Of a DNA stretch of 17,278 nt, positions 6,371 through 17,278 are shown one piece after another. The position numbers were made by a program, and so were the translations under genes. The first letter of the stretch is position 1; every line of letters starts with the position of its first letter. The DNA lies in the NCBI GenBank assembly GCA_964035545.1, contig CAXIUT010000262.1, forward strand, positions 1 to 17,278, given 5' to 3'. The DNA is from Bugula neritina (lineage: Eukaryota; Animalia; Bryozoa). Below the pieces are notes generated by a model. That model ran no database searches. It saw nothing but the letters and a program-made list of their open reading frames with translations, and was not told the origin of the DNA.

Positions 6371-7510
<1,140 letters not shown>

Positions 7511-7612
7511 AGTTGATTATTAAATTATTTAGAAGAATAAATCATTAGATCAAAAAAAAATATATTATGCTTACTTTCTTCATTAAATAAAATAATAATC
7601 AAACAATCAACT

Positions 7613-8746
7613 TCATTCCTTTCCTTTGTAAAAAGGATAGTCAATATATCCATTCGTAGCTCCATGCTATACCCCATAGAAAGTCTTAGTGTCCCACTTA
7701 TCATTAACTTCCCAATTGTTAACTACTCTTTCTGCCAAATCAGGATTACATACATAATATCGACCAAAGCTAATAGCATCACATAAATCAGATCTCATTT
7801 TACTCAATCCTGTTTCTGGAGTAAATGAATCGTTTCCTACTATTACTCCTGAAAAATATTTTCTAAAAGCCTAGCAAACATCAGGGATCTGCTCTCTTTG
7901 AGTAAGAGCATATTTTTGAGGAAAGTTGTAAGCTTCAGTTGATTACCTGAATTAAATAAATCCTATCTTTCTTTTGTCAAGTTCTTGAAGCAAAGTAGAA
8001 TATGTTTCAATTGGATTTTAATCATACATATCTTTTAGTCTAGTTGCAGGCGACAGTTTAATACCCACTCTATAAGCAGCAAAATGTTTAATAGCGATAT
8101 CTATCAGTTATAAACAAAATCTAATCCTATTCTAGACAGATCCTCCATATTGATCTGTTCTTTTGTTCGATACAGAACATAAAAACTGATTAACTAAAAA
8201 TCCATGAGCACCATGAAGTTAAATTCCATCAAAACCTGCCTATTTTGCCATCTGAACACTTTTCTAAAATTATTATTTAGTTGTTTCAATATCTTATTTT
8301 GTCATTTCCTTAGGCACCCTATAACTAACTCCTGGCATATTACTTATAGGCTCTGTTACTGCTATTGGAGAAGGACCCCATATTTATAACCCCTCCGTTT
8401 TCTAAGGAACAGTGCTTCGACCACAATGCAACATTTGGACAAATATTTTACCTCCCTTCGCATGCACTGCCTCAGTTACCTTCTTCCATCCTTACATTTG
8501 TTCTTTGTTGTACAAACAGGCAGCTCCTGGAGACCCTCTTCCTCTCAGAGAAAAAGCAGTAGATTATGTAATAATGAAACCTGCTCCTGCTCTTTGTGAA
8601 TAATATTCCACTAGAAGATCATTAGGTACTCCTAGTTTAGGATCACAACGTTGTCTAGTCAGAGCAGACATAATAACTCTGTTTTTAAGAGTAAGCTATC
8701 CCATTTTGAGAGGATCTCCCCATTTAAGTTAAGAAGATTTATCCAT
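7613..8746 (-). CDS. Old Yellow Enzyme / NADH:flavin oxidoreductase, paralog 2, 377 aa (catalytic Tyr replaced by Phe)
   Basis: Motifs LKNRVIMSALTR, EYYSQRAGAG, AGFDGIELHGAHGFLVNQFL, YGGSVENR, FGRYYVCNPDL and GYIDYPF. 1134 nt, TGA stop, colinear with paralog 1. Confidence 0.96.
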
Positions 8747-8976
8747 TGATATGATTATTGATTAGAATTTATATTAGGATATAAAAGTTATATTATTATT
8801 CATTTTTGGCTAAATATCTTTAAAAAAGTTCAAATTTATATAATTTCACCATTTGCGATAATTCAAAAATAAATGATCATATTTATAATTTGATTTTTAT
8901 TCTTTTTCAAATTATAAATTAATTCCAATCTGTTTAACTCATGTATTTGGACAAGAAAAAAAAGAATAAATTTACT
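8747..8976. promoter_or_regulatory. Divergent intergenic region (putative bidirectional promoter) between OYE paralog 2 and the SET gene
   Basis: 230-bp AT-rich spacer between head-to-head ATGs at 8746 (-) and 8977 (+). No specific motif identified. Confidence 0.5.
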
Positions 8977-10910
8977 ATGGGCAAATATCTTAGAAAAATG
9001 AAACAGCTCAGAAAAAAAGACTAAACTGCCAAACAAATAGGCTTAACTCCAGAGCTTTAAGCATATAAATAAGATTTACTAAAGCAAGGACTTGAAGTAG
9101 GACCTCTTGAAGTTGCATTATTTCAAACTAAAAATGGATTATCTTATCCAGGATTCATTGCTAAATAACCAATCAACTCCAATAGTGTTCTACTTCGAGT
9201 GCCAGTAGATTGTTTGTTGACAACCAGAGATGCCTTTCTCAGCGAAATCCAAAAGTATTTAGTTTTAGATATAGAGTGTTTGAATAAAATCCTAAGTTCT
9301 ATTCAAAAGCATTTAGTTCAGATTGGTAAGATAGAATTATTCTTACTTATTTACTTTTTGAATATCAAAAAGGAAAAAAATCAAAATGGCATCACTTGCT
9401 TTAAAATCTTCCCAGAGATATCGATTACGTCGCTTTCTGGCCTTAATCATAACTAAAATATCTTTAGGACACCAAATTTGAAAGAACAATAAAAAAATAA
9501 AAATAAAGAGTAATATGTGAACAGCAATAACTGATAGCAATAGCTAAGAGTTATCCTCAATTTTTTGATATCAAAGTCTTTACTCCATAAAATATCACAT
9601 GGATACACGTTCATTTAGTGACTAGATGTTTTGGAAAATATTTTTAATACACAACTATGGTACCTTATGCTTAACTGTTCAATCATTAGTGTGTAGATGT
9701 CTACTATACAATGGATTACGATGAAAATAATCCTCATAGTCAGCAAGAATAGCTAGATAAACCAAAACCTATTACATAGCAAGAAGAAGAGTAATTTGAT
9801 ACTAGCTAAGGATCTTATAATGCATCTGATGTTAGTCTTGAAGATGAATATTTTTAGTAAACTTAAATCCAAGAATAGAAAAGTTAAAATCCTTCATCAA
9901 AAGTCATAACTGAATATAAAACTATTCAGTCTTATCTTATAGCTTTTATAAATTTCAATGATGAGGTCAGTCTTCCTTATCTTTAAAAGATATATACATA
10001 ATTATAAAACATAATAAAATTGGAATAAGAACCTGCTATTCAAAAATTAGCTAAAATGCACAATAAAAATGTCAAATATCTCAAATTAGTTAAATAGTTT
10101 TTCATGAAGCAACAATCCAATAGATACACCTACGGTCTCCGCCAGAGAAAGAAGCACAAACCTGCCAAACACCAAAACAAATAAAAATAATAGCTAAATC
10201 CTCAAAAAAAATATTTTTAAGGTTCATGGCCTAAAGACAAATTTGATGATTTTTTGATGGTTTGTGGCCATAAAGATCAATTCCAAGCAGGATCTCAAGT
10301 CTACTTTTGCTATGGCCGACTCCCCAATCGTTTACTACTCATGCGCTACGGTATTACACTTTAACATAACAAGTATAATCACCTTTTTATCCATATTGAT
10401 ATTTCCCAATTGGTGTATAAGTGCCTTCCTTTACAGAAAGCTGTACAGGAGTAAATAGCACTAAGAAAATATAAGAAATTCAAAATAAAACAAATTACAT
10501 TTTGTAGTGAATTAGTAGTCTATCATCGAAGCTTGCTTTGGAAATATAATTAGGACCCCTAATACATATTTTCAGTTTTTGATTTGAATAGATAGCGAAA
10601 TGTGCTGAAGATGGTTCTGGATATTTTATAATAAAAAATGATTTCTTTTAAACATCCTCTTTAGTAGAATTAAAAATTGTTATTCAGTAAAGAGTTAGGC
10701 TATCATTAATATTTTGCAGTTATATACAAAGTAGAACAACAAAGAATACTAGCCTCACAAATGAGTATGATCAACTATGCATTTGAAATGATATAAGGGA
10801 TGTAGAAAGGAGACAGTTTATAGAAATTATTGAGGAAATAAGACAATTAATAGAAAATGAGATATCAAATTATGATGGAACAATACTTTAAATCTTACAA
10901 GTATTTCTGA
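8977..10910 (+). CDS. SET-domain protein lysine methyltransferase (Rubisco-LSMT/SETD3/SETD6-like), 637 aa; join(8977..9254,9275..10910)
   Basis: Motifs GFIAKEPI..VLLRVP..LLT, LLFEYQKGKKSKWHHLLENLP, FWPESEL, VTRCFG, MVPYAELFNH and GSQVYFCYGRLPNRLLLMRYG. One 20-nt intron restores the frame. TGA at 10908-10910. Confidence 0.9.
9255..9274 (+). other. 20-nt spliceosomal intron GTATTTAGTTTTAGATATAG
   Basis: Removal joins SEIQK to VFEENPKFY and restores the SET frame. Confidence 0.85.
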
Positions 10911-10944
10911 TTTCGGTTATTATTATTATTTAGATCTATTTATA

Positions 10945-12800
10945 TCATTTTTATTGGATTTATTCTTTGTCCCAATCATCTCCATATTGCTCTCTCATCT
11001 CTTCTTCATCCTATAAACTCATATTTCCATATAATTTACTCAAAATCTATATATCTTCAGCTTTAAACTGAGGCCCGTCTTATGGATCCAAAGCAACTCT
11101 CATTGTCTTTCCCTTCTCGCCAGTTACATACTTTTGCAGCTATAAAGGATCATCTAACTTTTTCATATGCTATTCCATCATTTCCTCTATTTTATTTTGC
11201 CTCTTCTGTGCTTTTACGCTCATTACAGGTTCTTTAATATTAAGCAAGTGATCTCTCAGATATTCTTTGTACAGACCTCGGAAAGATCCATAGTGATAGA
11301 TAGGCAATTTGATTCTATCCTCCATTTATACATTCATTTTTCCAACTAATTTGCTAAAAAGAATAATTCCCTCTTTAGAAGTAAATCCCTTAGTAAATTT
11401 ATCAAATAATTCAATTCTATGTTTATCTCCCTCTTCATTCAGATGATCTCTCATTTTCTGCATCAACATCTTCATCTTCTATGAATCCTAATGCACTGAT
11501 AAATAATTCTTAGCCTCATAAGTATAAGGAAAATACTTACTACTTCTTTATTCTATCAATTTGAACTGCTAACTCAATTTTATTCTAATTTGCTCACCTT
11601 CTTTCACATGGATATTCTATCTTCAAGTAAAATTACATCTATTCTTTTACGCATTAATTTATACCACTTCTTTTATGATGATTTTTTAGCCTATTCATAA
11701 CGATTTCTAAGTTATTAGTAAGTCATCGATGAAAAGAGATCACCAAAACACATATCTTTAAAAATGTTTTTGCCATTTGCAAATTAAGATTCAACCCAGC
11801 TTTCTCTCAATAAAACTATTAATGCAAATTTTTATAAAATAACTTGAACTCCTTCTTCTCGAATTTTAACCAATTAATCATATATTTCAGAATTAGGATC
11901 ATTTATTCCATTCCTATACACATTTTAAGGACTAACGTCAATTCGATGGACCTGCTCAGCTATCCTCGATACGAAATAACCAGGAACAAACATCAATATT
12001 TTATCCATCAGTTTAGCATATCTCTTCAGTAAAGCAGCCTGATAAGTTAACTCCCTTGAATGTATTTATGGCTATTCACTCATTACATAATTTTGAATTG
12101 CCTCACGGGTATAACTTATATGCCACTATTTTGATTCTTTTTGACGCTACTCAACTTTATTTAATGCTCTTTCAGCAATTCCTTTTAATTAATCTAAAGA
12201 ATACCTCATAATTAGATCTTAAATAACAAGAATATCTGAAGGCTTACCAAAAGCTAGCCTCGTTGAATCTTAAACAGATGCCAATTAAACAATAGTTTCA
12301 TAATCATGAGGCACAATTCTTCTATCTTTAAAATTGATCGAACAACATTCCTTTTTTTTACTATCCCATAAAAAATCTCTATCATCCTACATCCTCTTCT
12401 GAACATACCTGGTCATCCTTTCTTTACAATGCATCTTCTATGGTTTATAACATGGATATTCATAACGCTGTCTGATTCCTAGTCTATCTTCCCAAACCCT
12501 CACATAGTTATCATTTACCCCACCCAGAATAATAAGTTGATATTGACTATATTTCATCATTGACCTTGCAAATTTCATTGAAGTAAAGCTATAAGGCGTT
12601 AAACCAGCTATTTGACAATTATTACCATAAACAAATTATTAATATAATTTAGGTTAATGTACATATCTTTACTGAGAGGTAAATCTGCTAGAAAAATGAG
12701 CCATTCTTTATATCTTAATTTTAGCCAGTTCCTGATAACTTGGCACCTATTGCTACGATCGACGTGCAAAGTAATAGGACAGCCTCTGTGTCAACTTCAT
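10945..12800 (-). CDS. Hypothetical 611-aa protein with a probable mitochondrial presequence and possible degenerate TraB-like domain; join(12800..11637,11616..10945)
   Basis: Continuous frame from the ATG at 12800 (MKLTQRLSYYFARRS) with one 20-nt intron, to the TGA at 10947-10945. The domain call is by eye only. Confidence 0.82.
11617..11636 (-). other. 20-nt intron GTAATTTTACTTGAAGATAG
   Basis: The unspliced frame hits TGA shortly afterwards; removal gives about 220 further open codons. Confidence 0.85.
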
Positions 12801-12874
12801 TTAGTATTATTAATATCAAATACCATAAATATAATCTTGGTTATTTGAAGAGATTTATCATTAAATAATATATC
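12801..12874. promoter_or_regulatory. 74-bp divergent intergenic region (putative bidirectional promoter)
   Basis: Head-to-head ATGs at 12800 (-) and 12875 (+). Confidence 0.55.
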
Positions 12875-13788
12875 ATGCTTATGCTTAAATAACTTTTGCT
12901 TTTGAGTGTTCTCTTGGTTCTTACTCAAACTTGGTGGGATAAGGGGCATATGATGGTCTCTCAAATTGCCTGGAATCATCTAACTAATACCAAAAGATAA
13001 GCTCATCGTGATAGTTTCAACTAACTTGTTGTAGCCTTTAATAAATTTACTGACGGAAGGTCACAAACTTTCGTATAAGCCGCTGTATGGGCAGATGATA
13101 TCAAATCCTATGGAGCTAATATCTTTGATAGCTATCACTTCACCAACATGTACCTCTATTTATATTTAGAGTTTATGACCCTGACTATACATTTAATGGA
13201 ATGAGTTCGTTTCAGCAAGACGTCAATGCTATCAATATCATCAACTGGTGCCAAAATGTATTGAAATTAAACCAAAATACTATTTCTTTTGAAAGAGCTT
13301 GGATGGCGAGATATTTACTGCATCTTGTGGGAGATATTCATCAACCTTTGCATAGCACCAATATGTTCAATGGTAGTTTCAAAACTGGTGACCTTGGAGG
13401 CAATCTCATCAAGATACTGATTCTTAATGGAACTACAATGAATTTACATGCTTATTTCGATTCAATAGCTTTAGACCAAGATTCTGATCCAAGCAACAGA
13501 ATTCAAAGACCTTTAAACGATTCCTTCAGAGCCTACTTATAAGACGAATCACTAAAGATAATGAAACAGTATCCACCTGAATCTTTGGTTGATGAAATAG
13601 CTGTAAAGGATCCAAAGAGGTGGGGAGTGGATTCTTTTGAAATAGCAGTTGATAAGATCTATTCTTTTACTAAGAAGTCAAACCAAATAACTGAGGAATA
13701 CCAGAAATAGATGAGAGATATTTGTTTTAGACAGATAGCGTTGGCTGGATATCGATTGGCTTAGGCTATTGATCGCATATATGTTTGA
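12875..13788 (+). CDS. Secreted S1/P1 (class I) nuclease, 297 aa; join(12875..13149,13170..13788)
   Basis: Signal peptide followed by the mature N-terminus WWDKGHMMVSQIA, then AAVWADDIK, YHF, LLHLVGDIHQPLH, GDLGGN, NLHAYFDS and RQIALAGYRLA, the Zn-binding motifs of the family. Confidence 0.96.
13150..13169 (+). other. 20-nt intron GTACCTCTATTTATATTTAG
   Basis: Removal joins YHFTNI to VYDPD, in frame with the downstream HQPLH exon. Confidence 0.9.
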
Positions 13789-13822
13789 TCATTGGAATTT
13801 AAATAGAATTTTATTATAGAAT

Positions 13823-15187
13823 ATGGGAAATTAAGTAGAAAAACAAAGACAAACTCACAGGCATCACTACATATTTGATAAAATAAATTAAAATAAACCT
13901 ATAGAACTAGGATTCAAAAAACAATAATTCAAAGAAAAAGACAATAGACCAGTTCAAAAACATCAAAGAAAATAAAATATCATGATAAAACCATCTACTT
14001 CAATAGAACATAAATCAAAAAGATATCTATCTTTAACTAAATAAACTAGTCACCATGACAATGGGTCAGTGTTATCTAGGTGTAGTAGTAAGTAGAAAAG
14101 AGGAATTTCTATGACTCCTATTAAATAACAAACTCAAAAAAGAAGCATAAAATAAGTCATAAACTATCAACCTAAAATTAATAAAAATTAACATATGTAT
14201 TGTAAATATCAAAAACCACCCAAAAATATATCAAAATGCCATTCATACAAATAAATACCCACCCATATAACTCAACAACCAATTTCTTACAATATTCCTG
14301 CTAGAAGTCTAAATACAATTCCAGCTTAAACATCTGAATCTTCCATCAGAACTAGTCTTAACTATTAAAATCAACCCAACATTCACATCAGTTATGCTTT
14401 ACCCCAAAATAAACAAAAATAAAGCAATATCAGTCATAATCATCCTTCTAGAATATATCAAAGGTCATAAAAGTATTTAAATGAAGAAGATCACCCAAAG
14501 AAGTTGAAAAAGGTGGCTTTGACTCGCAGCTAAACAAACAAAACATAAAAATCACAAATTTATAATCAAGAAGAATCAGTCAATATCAATGAATGTTCAG
14601 AATTAAGCATTCTCAAACATAAAATGAAATAATAATCAAAATACAACCTTCCCAGAGATTTTAATCAAATAAACAGTAATAAATAAATATATCCTCTTAA
14701 AATATAACCTATCGATCTCAAAGAAAACAGTCATAAATCTTCACTATCTAATCATAGCTATAAATAAACATAAAGCAAATACGCCTTTTCTCATCAAAAT
14801 TACCACTCTGAACTAGCACAAATAAAAATAGATGAACTAATTGACCACAAACCCCTATCCCACTCGATTCTCAAAGAAAGCATAGTGAATAACTACTCAC
14901 TAGCTTTGGATATTTGGCCATAAAACAACAATACTTTACAACTATAATAAAAAATAGACAAATAAGCTATATCAAAAGCATTAATAGAATAACCCTGCTT
15001 CAACTTCCCAACCACAACAGATCTATCATACTACTCAGGAAATGACAATGGCTCTTTTATTCCCATAAAACCCATTCACAACAATAACACAACTTATATT
15101 CAACTATCAAATGATGAACTGCTGGAATACTGTAAACCGAATATAAATGCTCAAGTTATGGAAGACATCAGAAAGCTATAACGTTGA
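13823..15187 (+). CDS. Hypothetical 454-aa low-complexity (K/N/S/Q/E-rich) protein, possible N-myristoylation (MGNE...)
   Basis: 1365-nt TGA-free frame from the ATG at 13823 to the TGA at 15185-15187. It fills the space between neighbouring genes. No recognised domain. Confidence 0.75.
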
Positions 15188-15239
15188 TATTTATATCATT
15201 ATTTAGAATATCTAATTATAAGTATTGATTATCATACTA

Positions 15240-15707
15240 TCATACTCTTACCATCGCCTAGAGAAATAGTTAGAAAGTGATAAATCCAGTAAAATCTAAA
15301 TCCAAGTCAAAAAATATTGTATCGATGTCCTTGCTTTTCACATTCTATCCCAATCTTATCAGTCCATTTTTTATTTACAATGATGTCAGATGTTCTTAAC
15401 CATTGGCAAAAAACATAAATATCCTTTTAAAATCTGCCTACACCTCCTCATCAATACTAATTCTAGCATAAATACCCAATATTTACTCAGCCAAAAGATA
15501 CTCATCTCTTCTATGATACAACTTCTACATTATCCCATAGATATCACTATCCTGCAAATGATACCCTTGAACTTTGAGAAAATACTGACATTGGTAGACA
15601 TTAAATCGAGTCCTAGCCGGAAAATCTTTCACCAGTTGAGCCTTCAACTCCCTATATTGCTATGGCTTCAATTGGTAGTGAAAACGAGTGCTCTATTTCT
15701 ATTACAT
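15240..15707 (-). CDS. Divergent calmodulin/centrin-like EF-hand protein, 155 aa
   Basis: C-lobe reads ADFKRIFMFF...LEIKNGLIRLGENVKSKDIDTIFFDLDLDFTGFITFELFLEAMVRV*, matching the CaM/centrin LGE..D-x-D-x-x-G-x-I pattern. There is an alternative in-frame ATG at 15749. Confidence 0.82.
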
Positions 15708-15769
15708 CTATGGAATATATATATCGAATGCTAAAAATAATAAGATCATGCATATGATGTATCAGATAA

Positions 15770-15847
15770 GGGGTTGGGGTTGGGGTTGGGGTTGGGGTTG
15801 GGGTTGGGGTTGGGGTTGGGGTTGGGGGGGTTGGGGTTGGGGTTGGG
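15770..15847 (+). repeat. Internal (GGGGTT)n telomeric tract, the right telomere of the 1-15847 molecule
   Basis: About 13 G4T2 units with one irregular G7 run at 15824-15830. Orientation matches a right end. Confidence 0.95.
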
Positions 15848-16697
15848 CTTTGAACTTCTATACTTCTCCTCCATCCTTCCTGAACTTCTCTCAGTTGTTT
15901 CTATAATTTTTATATTTTTATTTCAAGTTCATAAATCTATCTTAAAAAACTAGTACTTTTCCCTCATAGGCATTGCTTTGGTCTAAACACTCTTGCTGAA
16001 TGGTGTTAATTAGTGATTTATATCTTTATAGTTATCCACTTTCAAGATCTGCCTTTCTTTCTTGTTATATTTTTAATTTTTTTAATTTAGAGTATTAACT
16101 TTTGTGTTTCTCGATATCAAAGGCTAGTTTGTTATTATCCATTTTGATATTCTTATTCTATGATGCTAAAGCCCTCAACTCCTAAATCAATTCACTAGAT
16201 ATCAATAAATATACCTAACATTAGAATGGTTAACTGCCTTTAGTTAATTTTTCATTTCTGTAAACTTTACCATTTCTTTACTATAATTCCTAAATAAATC
16301 AATTTGTACTTGATTTCTTCTTACATATTGAGACAATGTTTAACAAGATTTCTATGCTACTTTTATAATTCATTCAAAACTCCATTTTTCTTTACTCCTC
16401 TAGATCGACTTGACCCCTCTCGATGAAATTCGTTAATTACTCTTACATACTTCTAGTTTAATGCTAAGTAGCTTTATCTATACCTAATATATCGATTTTA
16501 TTCTTTTCTAGATCAACTATTTAAGTAGATAGTCGACCGATTCGTTCAATAAGTTGTTTATTTTTACGACGAAGAAAAAGAACTTATCCCTGTTATGCCT
16601 ATACTAGTCTATGGGCTAGTTTCTTTTGCTCTGCCATAGATACATTGAGTGAAGCTTTGGTATCAGTAGTGATGGATTTATTTTTCCCTAGACTCAT
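15848..16697 (-). CDS. Coiled-coil protein, 3'-truncated (about 256 codons, no stop), with four 20-nt introns at 16464-16483, 16290-16309, 16195-16214 and 15937-15956
   Basis: ATG at 16697 (MSLGKNKSITTDTK). Removing the four GTA..TAG 20-mers yields a continuous heptad-like frame ending GKIYELEIKIEKLEKQLREVQEGWRRSIEVQ, which runs directly into telomeric repeat. Confidence 0.78.
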
Positions 16698-16751
16698 CAA
16701 CGAATAAAATAACCAATAATGGCAAAACCAATTTAAATAAACATCAATAAA

Positions 16752-17146
16752 TCAAAAAATGTTATTATCAGTATTCCTCATCTCATTAAAGAAAGAATTC
16801 TTTAACAACTAACCCACTGTCACTCGCCTCTGATAGTGTGGAACCAACATCTTGTCTATCATACCTCTCAAATCACTATCAACTATCAAAGATCGATCAT
16901 ACTATCCCTGAATACGATTAAACTTACCTTGATAATCAATCTTTTAGTCTCATCTTGACTGATATTGAAGAAAGGTGGTCTTCCCACAAACAACTCATAG
17001 GCAATACAACCTAGAGACCAGATATCAATCCTATTATCATAAACAAGTTGAGTTAGTATTTAAGGAGCCACATAATCCAATGTTCCCACATATTACAAAG
17101 AACCATTCGAACAAGAACTGCCAAAATCACCTATCTTGTATGTGTT
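16752..17146 (-). CDS. Ser/Thr protein kinase C-lobe fragment (Aurora-like), 5'-truncated by the telomere; join(17146..16928,16907..16752)
   Basis: Reads [11 protein letters not shown]...VGTLDYVAP(TAA=E)IL...[24 protein letters not shown]...[16 protein letters not shown], with TGA at 16754-16752. The N-lobe and HRD motif are absent. Confidence 0.92.
16908..16927 (-). other. 20-nt intron GTAAGTTTAATCGTATTCAG
   Basis: Canonical GTAAGT donor. Removal joins RLIIK to GEYD and the subdomain XI region. Confidence 0.9.
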
Positions 17147-17160
17147 CTACCTAAAATAAA

Positions 17161-17278
17161 GGGGTTGGGGTTGGGGTTGGGGTTGGGGTTGGGGTTGGGG
17201 TTGGGGTTGGGGTTGGGGTTGGGGTTGGGGTTGGGGTTGGGGTTGGGGTTGGGGTTGGGGTTGGGGTTGGGGTTGGGG
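17161..17278 (+). repeat. Right terminal telomere, (GGGGTT)n
   Basis: 118 nt of perfect G4T2 repeats running to the end of the window. Confidence 0.98.

Follow-up and report, generated by a model that had tools for sequence, protein, structure and literature searches.

The introns of the heterotrich ciliates Stentor coeruleus and Blepharisma are 15 or 16 nucleotides (nt) in length and read GTA...TAG, and their sole conserved interior base is an A at -6, i.e. position 10 of 15 or 11 of 16 (PMC9505925; PMC13685798). Introns of Paramecium tetraurelia are 18-33 nt with a mean of 25 nt (PMC8997360), and lengths divisible by three (3n) are selected against in Paramecium (PMC8997360; PMC13685798). 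The Peritrichia are possibly the sister group of the Peniculida (PMC10553269), and for three peritrichs, Vorticella campanula, Epistylis hentscheli and Campanella sinica, intron-length distributions were called 'similarly narrow', with Paramecium and the heterotrichs as the comparison (PMC13685798, 2026, Fig. 2g); the text of that paper states neither a modal length nor a conserved A for peritrichs. A literature search returned no text that gives 20 nt as the modal length of peritrich introns or places their branch A at -6, and the length aspect is probably already visible in published figures. Here we describe eight 20-nt segments that interrupt genes of contig CAXIUT010000262.1 (assembly GCA_964035545.1, filed under Bugula neritina), analysed over its full 17,278 bp and referred to as the window. 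The segments are very probably U2-type GT-AG spliceosomal introns of a length at or near the shortest that the spliceosome handles.

In the first-pass annotation of the window, eight frame-restoring 20-mers had been listed, and each occurs exactly once, where it had been placed. All read GTA...YAG with an A at position 15 (-6). Excision of each joins two long TGA-free frames and retention shifts the frame, as had been proposed. Two are on the forward strand, in gene G4 at 9255..9274 (phase 2, GTATTTAGTTTTAGATATAG) and in gene G6 at 13150..13169 (phase 2, GTACCTCTATTTATATTTAG). The others are on the reverse strand, in gene G5 at 11617..11636 (phase 0, GTAATTTTACTTGAAGATAG), in a kinase gene at 16908..16927 (phase 0, GTAAGTTTAATCGTATTCAG), and in a coiled-coil gene at 16464..16483 (intron 1, phase 1, GTATAGATAAAGCTACTTAG), 16290..16309 (intron 2, phase 2, GTACAAATTGATTTATTTAG), 16195..16214 (intron 3, phase 2, GTATATTTATTGATATCTAG) and 15937..15956 (intron 4, phase 0, GTACTAGTTTTTTAAGATAG). 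The five introns at the right end had been assigned to a single gene, which did not hold: one belongs to the kinase gene, with its TGA at 16754-16756, and four to the coiled-coil gene, with its ATG at 16637.

As had been noticed, the interior of the eight segments varies at all positions but -6, where the A is conserved. On both strands of the window 18 GTA-N14-YAG 20-mers are present, with A at -6 in 8/8 introns versus 2/10 of the others (Fisher p = 0.001). With A at 26% of the other interior positions, the probability of eight A's at one given position is 2e-5, or 3e-4 when corrected for 14 positions. Enrichment of A at -6 over the AT background, on which the earlier claim hinged, is therefore present.

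Relatives of the locus were retrieved with a stop-free piece of the nuclease gene G6 (window 13201-13539), which gave many fragments 60-92% identical; a search with the nuclease alignment yielded no close relatives, its matches being distant homologues of 33-54% identity. Comparison was made with L001 (20.4 kb of a 249-kb Joint Genome Institute (JGI) metagenome contig, 47% GC), L014 (an 18.6-kb contig of a Logan SRA assembly, 39% GC) and L007 (12.9 kb from a JGI metagenome, 50% GC). L001 and L014 are collinear with the window over G1, an Old-Yellow-Enzyme gene, G4, G5, G6, G7, G8 and the coiled-coil gene, with amino-acid identities ranging from 31 to 73%, and the kinase gene is next in both, as found by tblastn in L001 and by L001-L014 comparison in L014. 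L007 carries G5, G6 and G8.

To place introns, every GT...AG pair of 8-120 nt near a frame switch was listed and the one with the best protein alignment kept; for two unknown sequences, the combination of GT...AG pairs with the best protein alignment was kept. No length or motif prior was used in this placement, and for a few introns the borders were taken straight from the sequence. A Viterbi gene finder working ab initio, with a flat intron-length prior, was rejected, as it chose wrong frame-restoring GT/AG pairs (41 and 50 nt).

An intron is present at the same site in L001 and L014 for 8/8 window introns, and in L007 for two, and the spliced proteins of the window and L001 align without gaps across 8/8 junctions with 58-69% identity. 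For G4, the junction EIQK-VFEENPKF (hyphens mark splice junctions) aligns with L001, and the orthologous introns of L001 (6135-6154) and L014 (4039-4058) are both 20 nt. The G5 junction is RI(D/N)-NIHV; L001 (8466-8487) has a 22-nt intron there, L007 (8235-8254) a 20-nt intron and L014 (around 6400, reverse strand) a 21-nt intron. At the kinase junction, I(K/Q)-G(E/D) and in the window IIK-GEYD, the L001 orthologue (13742-13760) measures 19 nt and the L014 orthologue (11964-11984) 21 nt. The four coiled-coil junctions, window versus L001, read L-ALNEKYV, EEEIK-NY, HSN(V/T)-(S/K)ELIEEL and YE(G/A)K-IYELEIK. Orthologues of coiled-coil intron 1 are 20 nt in L001 (13321-13340) and L014 (11496-11515), those of introns 2 and 4 are 20 nt in L001 (13141-13160 and 12788-12807, respectively) and in L014, and for intron 3 the L001 orthologue (13046-13065) measures 20 nt and the L014 orthologue 21 nt.

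The G6 junction, HFTNI-VYDPDYTFNG, has orthologous introns of 20 nt in both L001 and L007 and of 22 nt in L014, and the distant nuclease homologues P0011, P0028 and P0046 read HFTNV-(V/A)YDP uninterrupted at this place. A distant S1/P1 nuclease homologue (51% identity) in L011 (9290-10477) and L012 (6760-7947) runs in one frame across the G6 intron site, with no frame-breaking intron there (3n-length insertions were not inspected).

Between species, the orthologous 20-nt introns share 43/130 interior positions (33%), which is about random; conservation is confined to the length, the initial GTA, the A and the terminal AG, as the rest of the intron diverges. Further introns common to L001 and L014, outside the genes of the window, follow the same pattern. 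Within the window species, single-nucleotide polymorphisms between strains were found at 16208, which is position 7 of coiled-coil intron 3, and at 15946 and 15953, positions 11 and 4 of coiled-coil intron 4. These intron positions, 4, 7 and 11, are never in GTA, A15 or YAG, and the length is unchanged.

In total, 34 introns were defined by homology: 8 in the window (all 20 nt), 12 in L001 (ten of 20 nt, one of 19, one of 22), 12 in L014 (six of 20 nt, four of 21, two of 22) and 2 in L007 (both 20 nt). This gives 26 introns of 20 nt, one of 19, four of 21 and three of 22 nt, and none longer. GT...AG ends are found in all of them (8/8 in the window, 34/34 with the relatives) and all begin with GTA. 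A15 is present in 26/26 of the 20-nt introns, when only 19% of the other interior positions in the relatives are A (P about 1e-11). In the relatives, T is found at position 14 in 12/16 and a pyrimidine at position 16 in 15/16, resulting in a short T-A-Y context. Two 20-nt introns, L014 4039-4058 and L001 16729-16748, have the acceptor AAG instead of YAG.

In the introns of other lengths, candidate A's are found at -7 and -6 in the 19-nt intron, at -7 in one and -6 in the other of two 21-nt introns, at -8 and -7 in two of the 22-nt introns, and at -7 and -6 in the third. The 21-nt introns of L014 that were read from sequence have the A at -7 (coiled-coil intron 3) and at -6 (G5). The A is thus 6-7 nt from the 3' end and, with these introns included, 14-17 nt from the 5' end. 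Over the five loci, the motif GTA...A(-6)...[ACT]AG gave 63 matches at a length (k) of 20, versus about 31 at other lengths of the same mod-3 class, and no length other than 20 stands out.

A broad distribution of intron lengths, which had been named as refuting the first-pass annotation, was not seen, as the 34 introns span 19-22 nt. The 'fixed length' and the 'ruler' of that annotation need correction, however, since orthologous introns in close relatives are also 19, 21 and 22 nt. Judged from the homology-placed introns, length is sharply peaked at 20 nt and not absolutely fixed, and the window species may be narrower in intron length than its relatives.

In the spliceosomal reading, the recognised signal would be GTA at the 5' end, an A 6 (sometimes 7) nt from the 3' end, usually within T-A-Y, and (Y/A)AG at the 3' end. 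The segments would be removed from the RNA with this A, the presumed branch point on grounds of its conservation, serving as the branch nucleotide. The distance from branch point to 3' splice site would be nearly constant and that from 5' splice site to branch point held at 13-16 nt, and both distances together would produce the length distribution peaking sharply at 20 nt. The narrow range may reflect a deletion bias acting together with steric limits of the spliceosome. An unspliced transcript would always be frameshifted because 20 is 3n+2, and with a TGA within 4-36 codons in 7/8 cases it would be exposed to nonsense-mediated decay.

A strict two-sided ruler, accepting only exactly 20 nt with both the 5'-to-branch and the branch-to-3' distance fixed, would agree with the 20-nt length of 8/8 window introns and of 10/12 introns in L001. 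It is nevertheless unlikely, as orthologous introns in relatives with the same architecture are 19, 21 and 22 nt, and the varying distance of their A from the 5' end (14-17 nt) indicates that the 5' distance, at least, is flexible. Because the range is 19-22 nt with the A kept at -6 or -7 and the 5' distance flexing, a length floor appears to fit better than such a ruler. A related idea is that a 'quantised' class of introns evolved independently a second time in peritrichs, measuring 20 nt, holding the branch A at a fixed -6 and being defined whole, as one unit of about 20 nt, by the spliceosome; it is tentative and in our opinion somewhat doubtful. If true, such a spliceosome might in principle be able to remove directly adjacent introns with exons of only 1-2 nt between them.

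Several results weigh against the spliceosomal reading or narrow its basis. By searches of public runs, no RNA run holding the locus was found, and the exact spliced G6 junction of L001 had 0 matches in metagenome contigs. Read contigs over 15848-17160 (1,313 letters) all keep the five introns, as DNA would. The window sample is only 8 introns, and the length histogram rests mainly on the relatives. Within 45.5 kb of exon from three species, six complete or near-complete matches to the motif were found, two of them with YAG, and depletion of the motif in exons was not significant (6 at k = 20 versus about 9 at other lengths). Since exonic matches are not depleted, the 13-bit motif seems insufficient alone and other determinants would exist, or mis-splicing at a low level would be tolerated. 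One such exonic decoy lies at 17131..17150 on the reverse strand (GTAGAACACATACAAGATAG), a full GTA-N11-A-N2-TAG match over the conserved kinase codons NTYKIG just before DFG; its excision would bring a TGA into frame and take out residues kept in both L001 and L014. L016, from a third SRA run, was considered as a transcript and rejected, as it keeps the 22-nt intron and is genomic.

Since no RNA run holding the locus was found, the segments might also not be spliced at all but be handled by translational bypassing (hopping), programmed frameshifting or residual DNA excision resembling that of internal eliminated sequences (IESs). Such handling is highly improbable. The invariant GTA...A...YAG comprises the only conserved bases of the segments and is a spliceosomal signature common to the introns of Paramecium, Nyctotherus and Stentor. 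A skip of 20 nt is not the +1 or -1 of programmed frameshifting, and no take-off/landing codon pairs for bypassing are visible at the junctions. IESs are TA-bounded and absent from macronuclear DNA, when the segments have GT/AG ends and are present both on a telomere-capped macronuclear chromosome and in every DNA contig. The Logan contigs over 15848-17160 have no intron-sized joints and no indels. All DNA-like contigs keep the segments; they are not removed at the DNA level, and DNA-level excision is therefore ruled out.

Another explanation concerns only the A at -6, which could belong to an extended 3' splice-site or polypyrimidine-like signal bound by a U2AF- or SF1-like factor, with some other nucleotide as the branch. 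T14-A15-Y16 is a short motif with no match to the canonical UACUAAC, other A's are nearby in several introns, and branch sequences of ciliate introns are highly variable despite the conserved GUAGUA motif of U2 (PMC13685798). Against this, the A is the only invariant interior base (26/26), introns of other lengths always keep an A at -6 or -7, and the position equals that of the inferred branch A in Stentor and Blepharisma (PMC9505925; PMC13685798). A role other than branch point is rather improbable for this A, the presumed branch point.

The length of 20 nt had been recognised as 3n+2, and retention does shift the frame at every one of the eight sites. After retention, the first in-frame TGA follows 93, 10, 18, 13, 36, 19, 4 and 21 codons downstream for G4, G5, G6, kinase and coiled-coil introns 1-4, respectively. 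A frameshift on retention is guaranteed, an early stop is not, and the safeguard is weak for the G4 intron.

It had also been cautioned that 3n introns lacking TGA would be invisible to a frame-based method. One such intron exists in a relative: the G5 intron of L014 (GTAAAATAACTACCTACTTAG) is 21 nt, has no in-frame TGA and reads through as seven extra codons (VKELPTE, with UAA and UAG (UAR) as Glu) exactly at the splice site of the window. In the window itself the concern did not materialise, as no insertion of at least 4 residues with GT...AG ends was found when G1-G8 were aligned with L001 and L014. The eight 20-nt introns appear to be all the introns in the comparable window genes, about 14.5 kb of coding sequence.

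In well-aligned columns, TAA codons of the window stand opposite Glu codons of L001 38 times and opposite Gln codons 3 times, and TAG codons opposite Glu 22 times and Gln 6 times. The APE motif of the kinase is encoded as AP-TAA. Since these columns align mostly to Glu, UAA and UAG are read as Glu, with UGA as the sole stop. The reassignment of UAR to Glu arose once, in Peritrichia (PMC10553269). Because UAA and UAG encode Glu by this alignment, the host of the window is identified as a peritrich ciliate (Oligohymenophorea), by which the oligohymenophorean-like host of the first-pass annotation was borne out and narrowed.

Compared with the described systems, the eight segments, almost certainly genuine introns of minimal size, are a 20-base counterpart of the 15-base introns of Stentor. 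The first-pass annotation had pointed to a branch A similarly placed near the 3' end in Stentor, and the published position is indeed -6. Near-fixed length, the GTA start, the A at -6 and the same 5-nt gap to the 3' splice site are shared with heterotrichs (PMC9505925; PMC13685798). The peritrich introns differ in being 20 nt (19-22 nt in relatives), with five extra nt between the 5' splice site and the A, and in belonging to length class 3n+2 instead of 3n, with no phase-0 bias visible (0,0,0,1,2,2,2,2); the host also differs, being oligohymenophorean with UAR as Glu. With Paramecium they share the class Oligohymenophorea, GTA...YAG, weak signals, selection against 3n lengths and telomeres of the G4T2 type (PMC8997360; PMC13685798), whereas the 34 introns span a far smaller range (19-22 nt), situated at the low end of that of Paramecium. 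Introns that are spliceosomal, read GTA...TAG and measure about 20 nt are also known from the chlorarachniophyte nucleomorph (from 18 nt) and Nyctotherus ovalis (21-29 nt); the nucleomorph is of an unrelated lineage, however, and Nyctotherus has a broader range with no positional branch A detected (PMC2633312).

Convergence with heterotrichs is plausible, and the small size itself may have been inherited within Oligohymenophorea, since Paramecium, of a possible sister lineage, has introns of 18-33 nt. How a multi-megadalton spliceosome pairs 5' splice site, branch point and 3' splice site within 15-25 nt has to our knowledge been studied so far only in Paramecium and heterotrichs. The 20-nt peritrich cluster offers a second calibration point beside the 15-nt heterotrich introns. 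As the gap of 5 nt is the same as in heterotrichs and the five additional nt are on the 5' side, the comparison points to the 3' distance as the hard constraint and to a 5' distance that may be set by lineage. In practice, every intron-containing gene of these genomes will be mis-annotated by gene finders and RNA-seq aligners whose minimum intron length exceeds 20 nt or whose code is other than UAR as Glu, and such programs would read 3n introns such as the 21-nt G5 intron of L014 as coding sequence.

The window has a GC percentage of 31 and is capped by telomere repeats, (CCCCAA)n at positions 1-80 of the left end and (GGGGTT)n at 17161-17278 of the right end. With telomere repeats at both ends, it is therefore a complete, telomere-to-telomere macronuclear mini-chromosome of a ciliate, only 17.3 kb in length. 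The region syntenic to this chromosome sits inside the 249-kb contig in L001.

About 10 genes with TGA as sole stop are carried by the window. G1 (reverse strand) encodes a 1,500-codon Cys-rich membrane protein. It is followed by G2 and G3 (6374-8845, reverse strand), tandem Old-Yellow-Enzyme (NADH:flavin oxidoreductase) paralogues that are both intronless; at the matching position this gene is single-copy in L001 and L014, versus two copies in the window. G4 (8941..10910, forward strand) has two exons and unknown function, with 67% amino-acid identity to its L001 orthologue, TGA at 10908-10910 and a start inferred from the conserved M(Y/F)LDKK. G5 (10945..12800, reverse strand), likewise of two exons and unknown function, has its start inferred by alignment with L001. 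G6 (12875..13790, forward strand) encodes an S1/P1 nuclease (PF02265 on homologues), for which an exact-protein look-up of the window open reading frame (ORF) gave no record. G7 is on the forward and G8 on the reverse strand. For G1, G4, G5 and G7, no useful Pfam match was obtained from stop-free pieces. The coiled-coil gene (15848..16637, reverse strand, five exons, beginning at the ATG noted above) and the 3' part of the kinase gene (16754..17160, reverse strand, DFG...APE..., ending at its TGA) are both located to the right of an internal G4T2 tract.

The scan against Rfam identified no RNA genes in the window and no small nuclear RNAs in the window and four loci. L001 carries a splicing-factor gene at 17055-18962 (reverse strand), of the HAT-repeat Syf1/CRNKL1 type, intronless over about 630 codons and 74% identical to its counterpart in L014. 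Of the splicing factors, Slu7 and Prp18 went undetected in Stentor (PMC9505925).

At the right end, the kinase gene has lost its 5' side to the terminal telomere. The last unique bases before the right telomere, TTTATTTTAG (17150-17170), resemble the 3' end of an intron, and their position corresponds approximately to that of an intron in L001 and L014 (20 and 22 nt) directly before the kinase codons DTCKVGDFG. The right telomere appears to have been added within an intron, leaving a promoterless kinase fragment. A contig of run X1 also ends close to the right terminus, at 17079.

The internal (GGGGTT)n tract at 15771-15847, between G8 and the coiled-coil gene, consists of about 13 units, one of them irregular, and has the polarity of the right-end telomere. 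In comparison to L001 and L014, it replaces at least 33 codons of the coiled-coil 3' end together with the intergenic spacer. Gene order across the tract is the natural syntenic order, and contigs of runs X1 and X2 extend beyond 15848. The tract may represent an assembly join, or else a site of alternative fragmentation or of telomere addition.

The left arm of the chromosome (81-1697) contains no tandem intron arrays. It is AT-rich (20-22% GC) and includes a run of (AGA)23 (849-918); on the forward strand, a Glu/Lys-rich ORF may be present at about 515-1252.

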